Origin: Amphiscolops sp. MND2022
Taxonomy: Eukaryota
Assembly (NCBI GenBank): GCA_964187785.1
Contig: OZ076414.1
Span: 60,698,001-60,762,000 of the forward strand
Length of the DNA stretch: 64,000 nt
Direction of reading: 5' to 3'
How positions within the stretch are numbered: position 1 is the stretch's first letter; each line of letters starts with the position of its first letter. The notes below the pieces were generated by a model. The model was not told the DNA's origin. It did not search any database and saw only the letters and a program-made list of their open reading frames with translations. Position numbers and translations under genes: made by a program. Below are positions 7,001-13,000 of the stretch, one piece after another.

Positions 7001-10000
7001 AGTGACTTGATATATCTTTTCGGTTTCAGAAGAATTCTCGTGGAATCGTTTTTGACGTCCAAGCTTGTTTGCAACTGGTGCAGATTCTCCCTGAGCGTCC
7101 GACGGCTTCCGAATACATTATCTCTATGGAAAACGACTAGCTAAAACTGGAACTGATGTCTCGGTATTTCTATAAAAAATAGTTTTTAAAGAAATTTCTA
7201 TTCAAGTATCTTTTAGTTTCTGTCAGAACAGGATTCCGAGATAAGTCGGCGTTTTCATAGGGGAAACGAATTCTTGTTTAAAAATTCCATAGGTTGCAGG
7301 GGCTTTTTAAACGTTTTGATAGGAAATTTTTTTCCATGTAAAAAGTTCATGAAGGCCCATCAGGGCTTGCTTTTAACTAGACCAACTTTTTATGTTTGTA
7401 AAACAGGAATTTATATAGCTTCTACAAGGAATGAGAAACTTTGTGGTAGTTTCCACCGCACTTAACATCCTCAATTGTGAATGATGTTCTTCAACAGTAC
7501 TGATTGAGACTACATAGCATTGATACTTACTATAACAGGACCGTGCGGAATGAAACCACAAATGAGTTCTCTTGATTAGCTTGTATGTGCCCATAGTACA
7601 GAGGGGGCGTGTCGGTAAAAATGAGTCATTAAAAATAAAAAGAGTTCAGTGTCCGAACGCAGCAAGCTGCAGAGCCTCCTTACAGTGTCATTAACGGTCC
7701 CATGGTATTGTATGTACTGGCACACCTACCTTTGATTGGATTTGCAGAACTCACAACTGTAAACTCGACCCAGCGACTCAGTGTTTGTGAACTGTGACAA
7801 CATCTCATACAGGTCACAAGAGTCCATCTTGGAACACCTGTCGCTCTGGAACCTCTCCGGGAACTCCAGAGGCAGATCTGAGAAGGGTTCCAGCACTCTG
7901 TTCTCAGAATTGCACTTCAGACAGTTGACTTGGCTCTCTATTTCTCCGTAGAATATTCTCTCGTAAAGCCGCTTCCTGTTGGGAACATAGTCTTCCAGTT
8001 CGCGCTCGATTCTGTCGAGAAAGACCTGAAGGAATTCTTGGGCGTCTTGTTGGGCGTGGCCCCGTAAAAAGGGGATGGTCTTCCACACACTGCGCGATAC
8101 AGGAATATTTCAAAACCATCTTTATAAATTCATTATACCATTAGCTGTAGGACGCAAGCAATTATCTTTCATTTTGAATTTCTTTCTTGAATCTCTACAA
8201 ATGATTGAAAAGTTGAAAATTTTCTATTTTCTTCAGTTTTGAACTCAATCCAATGTATTTTCAGCAACAATGGCTCCCAATTCTACCAAACAAACGTCAA
8301 TGAGTTTGAGAACTTTCAAAACTTAATGAGAAGCTATGGAACCCGAAACGCAAATTTGGAATCGTTCATGAAGCCGAAGAGCAAATTTAGACGAAATCAA
8401 AGTGAATGTAGTTTTAAAAATAATTCAAAGGCATCTGATGTTTTCGAAACTGAAACTAGTTCCACTCTTCCTCACAGCAATGATCAAATCTATCGCATTG
8501 TAAAAAATTAATTTTCTAACTTTTCAGACTCAGTACCTCTTGTAAATGAATATTTCGCAATGGGAAATTAGATTTTTCCGGATCACTCAAATGTGAAGTG
8601 AACACTGTAACATTCCTGTGGAGCAGCCCAAAAGGAGCCACCAAGTGGTGTTTGCCGGCCCACATGACACGAAGCAGGGCGTGCAGCTCTTCGGCTAGCA
8701 TGACGTCATTGCTCTCGTTGTCGTCTATCTCCGAGTTGGCTTCGGATATCTCGGAGGCATCCACGGGAGTACACGAAGGAGTACTACTGCTACTACCGTT
8801 GTTGTTACTCGGCGTCGTTCCTTGTTTGGAGGAGGAGGAGGAAACATGGCTGTTGTTTGAGATACTTGAACCACCTTCAAACAACAGTGATGTACATTTG
8901 GAACATTTGTTTCACCATTGGTTTAAAAATGGTTTGTTAAACTTTTTTAACAATTAATCAATCTGTTAAACAGATTCGGTTTCGAAACCTAATTTTCTAG
9001 CCATTGAAAATAAAACTTTTGTCAATTTTATGTTCAAAACTCAAAGTCCCAAACACAAAATTCAGAGGTGGTTGAGGAGTTCAAGTAAGGCCAGGCTGTC
9101 ATGCCTAGTTTCCGCACCTTTTCTGAAATTCCAACCACTCATCCGATTGTTTTCAAAAACTTTGAGGAAATGGTCACAAAAGTAAACCCTAATGCGAAAA
9201 AAGTTGGTAAAAAATTAGATTCATGGTAAAAAATGGTTCAACAGATTCGGTTTTAAAATTTGTCAATCGGTTATTTTTAAAAAAAAATTAGTTGAAAAGA
9301 TTTACCACAACATCACTGTCAAACAAGTGTTGTGCATGAATCGAATGCCGGTTGTACTCATAGCTGAAGCTTCATTGAAAAAACTTTGTATGCGTTTTCA
9401 ATGGTGACCTACTGTGTTACTAGAGTGGGAAAGTAAGTTAGCAAACAGTTGCTCAGTTCTTAAAAAAGCACATTTTTTGGAATGTATTTTTTGCAAATGA
9501 TCATATTTTTTCAGTTATTTTTTTGCGGGTGGCTCCGAAAAAACTATATTGACACAAATAACAACTAACCTGTTAGTCCAATAGCTTGTCGATGAAAAAG
9601 ACAATTTTTCGTTTCCCATTTTTTGTGTTTCCTATTTTTTTATTGATTGCGAAAAAAATCGCTGTCCTCACTTGAGGACGAAATCACTGTCAACAATAAC
9701 CTAAATTAACATACCGATGTTTTCAAGCAGTCTACTTTTTTTCAACTTCTGTCGTTTTGTCAGTAGCTTATATTCTTCAGCACAGTTTTCATGTATTATG
9801 TTGGTACCGTGTTTGATTTTAACGGCACAAACATTAGAGTAGAAAGAGAATTTTTCCTTAATACAAGTTCCACCCAAGATTTTATGCGGTGAGAAAAATA
9901 CTAACCCTTGTGTCCATTTTTCTACTCATGAAATCGAGCGATGGTTCCGCTTTAAGATTACCACCACATGTACCGTTCTTGCATCTTAAAACCTATTCAC

Positions 10001-13000
10001 ATATTCGTATCAAAATTTGCGTGGAAAAGCGTTGAAACGGGCGCGCTTCAGTGAAAGACGACCCCTTCGGCTCAAAAGAGGTGTTTCCCCAACTGAAACC
10101 ATAAAAAACTTCAAGGAGGGAACATTTGGTGAAGAAGAAAGTTTCGAAAAAAATCACAGTGCCCAAAAAAGAACCAAGACATATGGTCTCGTGCAGCTTT
10201 GTAGAAATTTTGCCCCTCTGGGGCTCTAACAATTCTTGTTAAATATCTAAAACTATAAATTTTTAGTTTCACAGTTTTTCCTGATTATATCGCATTGAGA
10301 GAACTCTGGACAGATTTCTCAAATTAATAATAACAATTTACGAACATTGCAACAAAATTGCAAAAGAACATTGCAAAAAGTAAGAGCAGCTAACAGCACA
10401 AAACGGATGAGAAATTGTTATAAAAAATCAACTTTCCCGGGATTAAATTTGAAAATGTACAACACTGCGAACCTTCTAAACCATTGCATGTCTTCCTGCT
10501 GATTCTCTGGTAGCACTCCGAGGTCGACAAACGCTTCGTTCTGGGCTTCAAAGTTTCTGGCGAAGGTGGACTGCGAAATGAAACATTGTTTGATGGATAA
10601 TCAGTGGCTGAAGGTTGTTTTTCATCGCTGGCTGTTGTTGACACATCTGATGGAAAATTTATTTCACAACACAGTTTATCAAAAATATTTTCAGGTCGTT
10701 TGTCGAACTCTTCCAACTTCGGTCTCATCGGAGATCCCGGAGGCGAAGAGAAACCTGGCGTCATAGAGTGTTAGCAATTCATCTTTGAAAACAACTTACA
10801 ATTTTGTTGCGACTCAAACAGCGGCTATTCCGACAATTTGTCATTTGATCAAATCAATTAGCTTTTCAAATGTCGGCAGAAGCTTTAACTACTTGGAGAA
10901 CCTGGATTTGCTTCATGCAACAAGCCGGTTGCAGGCTTGACTATGTCTAGGGCTCAAAAATATGAGGACCGAAACAAAACAAAACGAAAAAAATTCATGA
11001 AAATTCAATTTCAACTCATTTCGATGGATTTTATTCGAGAAAAAAATCTGTCTGCCTTTCTAGCAAGAAATCTCTCATTGTAACCACTAAGCTATCCCTG
11101 GTTACAGTAATCTCGCAGATTGAAAAAAAAACTTTCGGTGAACCATTTTGGTAAAGTCCGTCGGATTGATAAAAACCAGCTTTATATAGCTCAGACTAAA
11201 AATAATAAGTCGGGAACGGCCCAAGTCGGCGTCATATCTAAGGCTCAAAAATATTCAAGGAACAACTATTGTGAAATTTTTCAATTATCACGCAGTGCCG
11301 AAAAATACCCAAAAAATTTCCCGAAACTCGAAAACAGCTTTCTTTCTGAACTGGAAACATCAGAAAAAAACGAACTTGCCTTTGAAAAAATATTTCAAAA
11401 AAAGTATTTGGTTAGAAAAGTAGCATATTGCCGAAAAACCCAAAGAGAGACCCTTTAGGCTCTTAAAACGTTTCTTACAAACCGAAAACTCCAATGAAAG
11501 TCAAGGGGTACCCTTTAGAAGAATTCAAAAATTTTCCGAAAAAAGTCGTTTGATCTCCCCTCTACTGTGGGAAGCACAAGAAAATTTTGTGGTTTAGTGC
11601 GAGACTCGAACCCACGCTCTCCTGCTTCTGAGACCCCAGAAAAATAGCCGGCCAAAAAGTTGAACAAATGAATAAAAAATGTGGACCGATCGCATCGAAC
11701 TAAAGAAAAAAACTAGCCACTGTAAGCGAAGCGTTTCAAGTTATAACAAAGTTCACCTAGAATAAATTAATCGCAACTAACTGATTTAGTTTTGTTTGTA
11801 TTTTGTACGCCTGAGGGCAACAAAATAATAAATTTTTTACTTCTTGCTAACACTGATATGTTCACCTGATATGTTGAGACGTAGAAAAAAGTCTGTGAAG
11901 GGTAAAAGGTGGCCCAAAACTTGAAGTATGGAGTTGAGATAGCACGTGTTGCCGAGGTTGCGGAGGCCGAGGACGCCAGGGGTTAAAGCTAATTTGGGTC
12001 GTTTTTTCTGAGGTCGAGTGGCTTGCGAGCTGGCAGCAGCACTAGAAGTAGAGCTAGCCATGGCACAGGGCGGGCGTGTACATAACACTTTATTGATGAT
12101 CAAAACCTCGAAAACAAACCCGGGAACGACCCGAACCTGCGCTTGGTTTCAATTTTAAAAATCCTTTTCGAAAATCGTTTGGGGCTCAGTTTTGAGAAAA
12201 CTCTAACGGAGGAATGAAGTAAAAAAAGAATATTTTGAAACAAAAAATGTTTGAAAAAATTTCAGTACCAAATAATATTCAAAGAGAGCCATTTCGCCAC
12301 AGCTATTTTTGAAGGGCTATTTTACTCAGATAATTGGGGAAAATAGCACATCTATCGCTGAGATCTCTTAAATGACTGACAACCAGTGATGATGTTGAAT
12401 TTTTATAACCATCGGTTAATAATTTAACCAATGAGAAGTTTTAAACAGAATTTTTTTTTCAACTTTATGATTATTTAACTCATTATTCAACAAATTAATA
12501 ATCTGAACTATAATTTTATTATAATATTAATTATCTGAAAGTGAAAGTCGTTGCTTTGATGCCTCAATTTACAATGTGAATTTAGTACATCTAACATCAC
12601 TAATAAATCTGTTAAAAACACCCCGAATTTAACCAATTTGGTCTAACAGATCTGTTAATTGTTAAATGCATTTAACAAATCATTTATTTAACAGATCTGT
12701 TAAACCAATGGTCAAATAATTTGTTAAATTGGTCATCATTGCTGATAACGTTTCCTCACCAAATATAGAAAATTCACAATTCGACGACGGAAGTGTTTGT
12801 GCGAGCATGAAGCACGCATGTTTAGAAGTTTGATCATGCCCACCCTGTGAGAGAAGAAGTTCGAGATGTGACGTCATCGCTTTCAGACGCACGTTTGCGC
12901 TTCTTTTTAAGTAGTTCTGCGAGTTTGCTGGACTTGGGGGACACGGGACTGGGCAGAGGTCGACCAGGGTTAGATTTGATCCACGATCGCTTGTGTTTTT

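Follow-up and report, generated by a model that had tools for sequence, protein, structure and literature searches.

The USP44-like gene and its introns

We analysed a window of 64,000 nucleotides (nt) from the acoel Amphiscolops sp. MND2022 (GenBank assembly GCA_964187785.1, contig OZ076414.1, positions 60,698,001–60,762,000 of the forward strand; the positions below are counted from the first letter of this window). A gene for a USP44-like deubiquitinase lies on its minus strand at 829–21393, and the sixth of its eight introns (I6, 8090–8615, 526 nt) starts with GA where the other seven start with GT. In the present study, we describe this intron and its setting, and weigh the evidence that it is probably removed as a GA–AG intron.

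The gene was delineated by tblastn with the closest named protein, the ubiquitin carboxyl-terminal hydrolase 44-like of Convolutriloba macropyga (XP_075245934.1; P0151), and by enumeration of the possible junctions. It has nine exons, all on the minus strand (21393–21181, 16903–16721, 13112–12844, 12053–11866, 10754–10473, 8874–8616, 8089–7730, 1571–1344 and 1096–829), and the spliced coding sequence of 2250 nt is open and encodes a zf-UBP domain and a full catalytic domain. The Pfam family UCH was found on the exons, the orthologue carries zf-UBP plus UCH, and the Cys and His boxes are present in the spliced protein; an N-terminal zf-UBP followed by a USP/UCH domain with both boxes is the arrangement of the USP44/USP49 type. 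The gene is the sole orthologue in the 1.07-Gb genome, the remaining matches being paralogues with 26–43% identity. Exon 6 (8616–8874) ends with ...GLLH followed by AG in phase 2, as placed by tblastn and junction enumeration, and exon 7 (7730–8089), which is 78% identical to the protein P0002, begins with the split serine codon. Homology to solved USP structures begins at the second residue of exon 7, a tryptophan (W), and a search of the PDB with the open reading frame that reads through from exon 6 gave no match.

At joins defined by homology, seven of the eight introns are GT–AG and I6 alone deviates. The canonical donors, with a slash at the splice site, are GAG/GTCAGT (I1), AAG/GTGAGC (I2), AGG/GTGGGC (I3), CAG/GTGAAC (I4), AAG/GTTCGC (I5), AAG/GTAGGT (I7) and CAG/GTAAAC (I8); the boundaries of I3, in a poorly conserved region, are the least certain of the gene. 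Comparison with the related gene L010 (introduced below) gave a proportion of non-synonymous differences (pN) of 0.11 against a saturated proportion of synonymous differences (pS) of 0.79, which, as judged from sequence divergence, shows long-term purifying selection on the USP44-like gene. Non-synonymous distances (dN) to two relatives of the Convolutriloba clade were 0.31 and 0.30 for this gene versus 0.28 and 0.27 for L010, pointing to a branch that would be somewhat faster and far from neutral. Because the gene is constrained, its frame open and its seven canonical introns intact, the 526 nt must leave the mRNA.

Boundaries of intron 6

In minus-strand orientation, the last bases of exon 6 are ...GGG CTG CTC CAC AG, up to 8616, followed by GAATGT (8615–8610; longer stretch GAATGTTACAGTGTTC), and the intron ends ...GCGCAG at 8090, where exon 7 opens with T GTG TGG AAG ACC at 8089. 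These exon ends and the length of 526 nt are those proposed in the initial annotation, which had been made from the sequence of the window. The 526 nt contain in-frame stops and are not a multiple of 3. When all in-frame, stop-free joins of exon 6 to exon 7 were enumerated and each was scored against three relatives, excision of the 526 nt ranked first, and it was the only excision that left no scar. The resulting peptide aligns gap-free with those of the relatives, and the join, CAC AG^T GTG TGG, restores the motif HSVW exactly (mRNA junction CTCCACAG^TGTGTGG); at the joined motif, the vertebrate-like homologue P0008 reads FAMLHSVWSLIPAFRGY. Of 110 homologues, 98 have the W of HSVW, 105 have V, I or L just before it, and two show an indel at the site. 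As CAG stands at both borders, the same product can be written in four slide-equivalent forms, CA–CG, AG–GC, GG–CA and GA–AG. Only the last has an AG acceptor, in line with the earlier remark that sliding yields worse dinucleotides.

The donor dinucleotide GA (8614–8615) stands in the context CAG/GAATGT, which matches CAG/GTAAGT at seven of nine positions and so equals the best of the gene's canonical donors (range 4–7); the acceptor AG (8090–8091) stands in the context TATTCCTGTATCGCGCAG/T. An exonic AG precedes the GA site and six of the seven canonical donors, with GG before I3, and no rival donor has one. The intron thus combines GA and AG termini at frame-restoring boundaries with an exonic AG and an A at +3, as expected at the DNA level of a U2-type GA–AG intron. 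Against the U12-type donor consensus RTATCCTT, GAATGTTA matches at only four of eight positions; an element TTCCTGTAT, 9 nt from the 3' end of the intron, looks like a U12 branch site and is insufficient by itself for that class. No Rfam family reached its threshold in I6, and no known RNA is hosted there.

Genomic reads at the donor

We compared the window with Logan contigs, assembled from raw reads of four DNA runs that belong to one sample and one study (summed depths about 21–66). Contigs over 8183–9062 and 7698–8122 agree with it at and near both splice sites. The two haplotypes appear as alternative contigs at 8093–8212, with heterozygous single nucleotide polymorphisms at 8123, 8135 and 8153 as well as an indel of 2 nt at 8181, and both join into one contig across the donor, showing GA. 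Thus the GA is real and homozygous in the sequenced animal. The initial annotation had singled out 8614 as the base at which genomic reads might reveal a T; GA stands in the contigs of all four runs with no T variant, in a type of contig that can lose rare variants. In the contig of one run, a 3-nt indel was also seen at 8828, in the serine-rich coding part of exon 6, where it is in frame, unlike the 2-nt indel of the intron.

The orthologous site in related acoels

In C. macropyga (L001, L002), residues 134–698 are encoded in one uninterrupted exon, and the genes L011 (P0153) and L010 (P0154) share this uninterrupted single-exon build. The site of I6 reads CAC AGT GTG TGG, CAC AGC GTG TGG and CAT AGC GTT TGG in the three relatives (consensus CAC-AGY-GTN-TGG), and the SVWK codons are intact in the Amphiscolops gene, with 11 of 12 bases identical to C. 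macropyga. Because three relatives encode the region in one uninterrupted exon, the 526 nt are lineage-specific; the orthologous intron, for which the initial annotation had suggested looking in relatives, is lacking in all three acoel genes. L010 is the closest of them, with 84.7% protein identity to the Amphiscolops gene versus 63–69% for the others, and it is a true orthologue rather than a retrocopy, because upstream exon 2 and intron 2 are kept. In a tree, this gene and L010 stand together or adjacent. A sister relationship of the two and a rooting between them differ by a log-likelihood (delta lnL) of 0.32, with a P value in the approximately unbiased test (p-AU) of 0.46, and the pairwise identities support sister status.

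A fourth, acoel-like relative is the metagenome scaffold L009, which groups with the Convolutriloba pair. It carries the gene from exon 2 onward with a short intron 2 only, without I3, I4, I5, I7 and I8; a run of 10 N (L009:1146–1155) lies exactly over the I6 site, where 17 residues are missing, making it uninformative at that point.

The introns I4, I5, I7 and I8 likewise fall in sequence that is uninterrupted in the relatives, and their GT–AG joins are scarless in the present gene. A scarless join at I6 fits this pattern, because the four new introns that lie in conserved sequence are all scarless. I3 is also absent from the relatives, in the poorly conserved sequence noted above.

Intron gain and loss were then compared. 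By parsimony, two wholesale losses mediated by cDNA stand against six gains, and the counting of events does not decide. The orthologues of a bivalve and of Lingula are intron-rich; the bivalve exon spans the I6 site, and the Lingula exon there was not recovered. I7 alone of the new introns is close to an intron of an outgroup, and I3–I6 and I8 match no mapped position in the bilaterian outgroups. We favour intron gain in this lineage over loss, because the outgroup positions are unmatched, the target repeat of I5 is still recognizable despite the saturated pS of 0.79, and I5 ends in transposon-like termini (see below); for I6 itself, this argument for gain is indirect.

Origin of the new introns

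In I5 (8875–10472), inverted copies of CAGTG(T/A)TGTACATTT lie 5 nt inside the donor and 10 nt before the acceptor. The terminal 15-mer CAGTGTTGTACATTT of I5 has 904 copies in the genome, versus 129 for a control, and many of these form inverted pairs with a spacing of about 440 bp (430–460). Because of this copy number and of the inverted pairs, the termini of I5 mark a young family of miniature inverted-repeat transposable elements (MITEs). Its flanks carry a repeat, TTTAGAAGGT versus TTTGAAGGT, in which the intronic copy of the target site is still recognizable; since the flanks repeat in this way, the duplicated AG/GT target supplies both splice sites of I5.

No such family was found for I6. 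A search of the genome with the 526 nt returned the self-match only, where a transposon-derived intron would have many copies, and its terminal 19-mer is barely enriched (235 versus 174 in the control), the matches sharing nothing further. A recurrent match to the I6 terminus with three mismatches, CAGGTATGTTGCTGTGTTC, proved to be an unrelated repeat with no further similarity and was rejected as a transposon family. The inverted repeat of I6 has 11 bp with one G:T pair, lies near but not at the ends, and includes in its 5' arm four ancestral exon bases; the only direct repeat is CAG. A copy of the ancestral junction, ACAGTGT, is present at +8 to +14 of the intron. Because the putative target duplication is without GT, the donor of I6 would have to come from the insert.

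The remaining new introns of the gene have CAGGT, GAAGGT, AGGT and TCAGG as direct repeats at their borders. The border repeats of the new introns as a whole range from 3 to about 10 nt, mostly with AGGT, and in this comparison they resemble both introns from double-strand-break repair and transposon insertions; passages of PMC4202315 describe short border repeats for new introns of the former origin and for the latter. As separate observations, the last 10 exon bases before I4 (10755–11865), AACATATCAG, recur 3 nt into that intron, and CAGTGTT lies within 6–17 nt of the donor in I4, I5 and I6. In C. macropyga, intron 1 of the gene (L002:3085–7343) is absent from the Amphiscolops gene and lies between the copies of a 9-nt direct repeat, CAGGTAGAA, which contains AG/GT and looks like a target-site duplication.

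Pairing between the intron ends

The inverted repeat and the predicted fold place two helix arms at the ends of I6: a 5' arm, ACAGGAAUGUU (8609–8619, minus strand), which covers positions −4 to +7 about the 5' splice site, and a 3' arm, AAUAUUCCUGU (8099–8109, minus strand), 10–20 nt upstream of the 3' splice site. Exonic GCUGC (8623–8627, minus strand) is predicted to pair with GCAG/U (8093–8089) across the 3' splice site and would extend the helix by 5 bp. The terminal duplex has a predicted energy of −24.3 to −24.7 kcal/mol and closes I6 in both the minimum free energy and the centroid folds, with the A at +2 in a Watson–Crick pair; the fold of the whole intron is not unusually stable (z 0.6).

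The pairing of the ends of I6 gave p 0.003–0.03 under six nulls. The same test gave p values of 0.004 for I3, 0.033 for I4, 0.11 for I5, 0.70 for I7 and 0.40 for I8, and of 0.16 and 0.24 for the old introns I1 and I2 respectively; when the six new introns were combined by Fisher's method, in a calculation by hand, p was about 0.001. The end helices of I3 (12054–12843; 12 bp, CACAGGGUGGGC with GCCCGCCCUGUG) and of I4 (11 bp) belong to GT–AG introns. Going by these predicted structures, several of the gene's new introns would have paired ends whatever the donor, and the pairing may fit an insertion relic no less well than a splicing device for GA donors.

U1 small nuclear RNAs and the proposed mechanism

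We read 21 copies of the U1 small nuclear RNA in the genome. Most have the canonical 5' end AUACUUACCUG, and the variant 5' ends are AUACUAACCUG (three copies), AUAUUUAAACCUG (three), AUACUUACUUG (one) and AUUCUUACCUG (one), at loci that include L021, L023, L027, L028 and L033–L035; the variant copies all score above the Rfam cut-off.

The course of events that we propose is as follows. DNA would have been inserted into the ancestrally uninterrupted CAC-AG^T-GTG-TGG of a catalytic-domain exon and become a lineage-specific spliceosomal intron, which the major (U2-type) spliceosome most likely removes at CAG/GA...CAG/T, restoring the frame and HSVW. For its recognition, the donor would depend on the strong CAG of the exon together with G at +1, A at +3, G at +5 and U at +6, a match to U1 and U6 with the sole exception of +2. 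The 11-bp helix and its 5-bp extension may bring the splice sites together, or may just as well be left over from the insertion.

A more general version would hold that, in this lineage, the major spliceosome reads donors as AG/G-N with position +2 free, and that end pairing left by insertion helps to define young introns. We put this forward only tentatively and consider it rather doubtful. If it were true, freshly inserted DNA could become an intron without GT, which would give animals an equivalent of the 'intermediate' introns of euglenids, whose splicing is assisted by structure; the USP44 intron would be a clean case of it, the orthologous site being empty in the closest relative.

Which cut is made

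On the comparative evidence above, removal of the 526 nt as a GA–AG intron is probably real, and we give it a probability of about 0.55. The initial annotation had reached the same intron by elimination. The comparison with relatives favours its conclusion, but the elimination is flawed, since an in-frame donor, AGT/GTTCAC, exists 12 nt downstream with the same acceptor. The sole GT–AG solution that it allowed, from TTGA/gtgatc to aaag/ with an insertion of about 20 residues, is in fact out of frame and runs into stops. The nearby sites AAT/gt and ACA/gt are in phase 0 as it stated, yet they do not necessarily shift the frame, as both are in frame with the acceptor AAG/ACC at 8079.

Several points weigh against a cut at GA. 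There are three in-frame canonical GT–AG alternatives, one with the donor 12 nt downstream and two with an acceptor 10 nt downstream, and the use of a GTTC donor in I5 shows that weak GT donors can work in this gene. A search of sequencing runs for the locus found four DNA-like runs of one sample and no RNA run, and the protein collection held no transcript-derived fragments of this species at 384–1221, 66–210 or 110–351 amino acids. Since all of the reads come from that one sample, a fixed or high-frequency defective allele would go unnoticed. Of the 21 U1 copies, not one has a 5' end that would pair with A at +2 or in a shifted register, and a helix that covers the 5' splice site would normally impede the binding of U1.

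The strongest competitor of the GA cut is the canonical cut at AGT/GTTCAC (GT at 8602–8603, last exon base 8604, minus strand), which would remove a 514-nt GT–AG intron with the same acceptor. Twelve inserted bases would then be kept, so that RNVTV replaces S with four extra residues, and the junction would read ...CACAGGAATGTTACAGT^TGTGTGG. This form is in frame and stop-free and has the same acceptor and phase as the GA–AG form; besides the precedent of I5, the three U1 copies with the 5' end AUACUAACCUG would pair with the U at +3 of its donor, and scarless excision is not obligatory for new introns. However, its donor matches only two of nine consensus positions and lacks the exonic AG, its four residues would be added right before the near-invariant VW, where indels are so rare among the homologues, and it would leave a scar when all four testable new introns are scarless. 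We regard this form as unlikely, although it is the best placed of the alternatives; were it true, I6 would be an ordinary new intron with a small scar.

A different possibility is that no productive splicing takes place, the gene having been inactivated or crippled, in the individual or its population, by the insertion or by a mutation of T to A at +2 of a donor that was formerly a canonical GTATGT. In model systems, a GA donor is usually a dead end, as known from classic work on beta-globin and on yeast mutants, and this counts for a defective gene, as do the single sample that was sequenced and the slightly larger dN to the Convolutriloba clade than that of L010. Against it stand a coding sequence open over 2250 nt beside seven intact canonical introns, the low pN set against a saturated pS, the lack of a second gene copy that could take over, and the presence of GA on both haplotypes. 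The polymorphic indels, 3 nt in exon 6 and 2 nt in the intron, speak the same way, and the predicted pairing of the A at +2 in the terminal helix may argue mildly against a recent T-to-A change. Taken together, a defective gene seems improbable to us.

The two other in-frame canonical joins would combine a phase-0 donor, ACA/GTGTTC (8606) or AAT/GTTACA (8612), with the acceptor TGGAAG/ACC (AG at 8080–8081, first exon base 8079, minus strand), giving RNVT or RN in place of SVWK and the junctions ...ACA^ACCATC or ...AAT^ACCATC. Both are in frame, stop-free and GT–AG, but they would remove the conserved W, the SVWK codons are intact, and their donors match only two and four of nine consensus positions. 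Their acceptor, rich in purines, comes 10 nt downstream of a good CAG, and in 3' splice-site selection this upstream CAG would normally be used first. These joins are very improbable. A sequencing or assembly error at 8614, with T as the true base, is negligible, because the raw-read contigs of the four runs match the window over 8183–9062 and show GA with no variant near the donor. The probability that remains beyond the GA–AG cut and these alternatives is left to unforeseen options.

Comparison with known GA–AG and new introns

GA–AG introns as a class are already known, and the acoel USP44 intron would add one probable case. An AG/GAA context has been reported for RNA-supported GA–AG introns of Eurytemora affinis and of Oikopleura dioica (PMC7072748), and the putative cut in I6 resembles these U2-type introns in having GA after an exonic AG, then A, with a normal AG acceptor. 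New introns in Oikopleura are mostly GA–AG according to work cited in PMC4202315, and the link made there between GA–AG borders and newly gained introns would extend to I6. Unlike I6, which is known from DNA alone and in an acoel, the GA–AG introns of Oikopleura and Eurytemora are RNA-verified and number in the thousands. The human FGFR genes, as cited in PMC7072748, have a single, efficiently used GA–AG intron in an otherwise canonical gene; their GA site is said there to depend on a canonical GT six nt upstream, whereas at I6 the nearest GTs are found downstream, their Gs standing at +5, +11 and +13.

In its absence from relatives and its short direct border repeat, I6 is like transposon-derived introns or introners and like the introns of Daphnia from double-strand-break repair, but it differs from introners in being single-copy and without a family. 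With its predicted helix, it may also resemble the nonconventional and 'intermediate' introns of euglenids, for which PMC3935182 and PMC4770533 describe a helix uniting the junctions and a non-GT border. Unlike those introns, I6 has a predicted helix of modest significance that is found also at GT–AG introns of the same gene, a normal AG acceptor and no sign of a non-spliceosomal mechanism. A literature search of limited coverage, which is not proof, found no report of non-canonical splicing in acoels.

If the GA cut is true, I6 would show cleanly, in a natural setting, how an intron that was gained when DNA entered a conserved exon of a catalytic domain is removed with no GT donor, with the pre-insertion site preserved in three relatives and seven canonical introns as internal controls. 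It would then bear on the birth of new introns and on the settings of gene predictors for such genomes. If a relaxed rule at +2 also held in this lineage, an acoel would stand beside Oikopleura and Eurytemora.

Other features of the gene

The C-terminal tail past FYVKC (829–960) is longer than, and different from, the tails of the relatives (...IVxNxN), and may contain an extra small 3' intron or be a diverged tail. The word depth in the DNA runs reaches 10^4 to almost 10^6 at 9311–9763 within I5 and at 11123–11726 within I4, which identifies these two segments as nested high-copy repeats.

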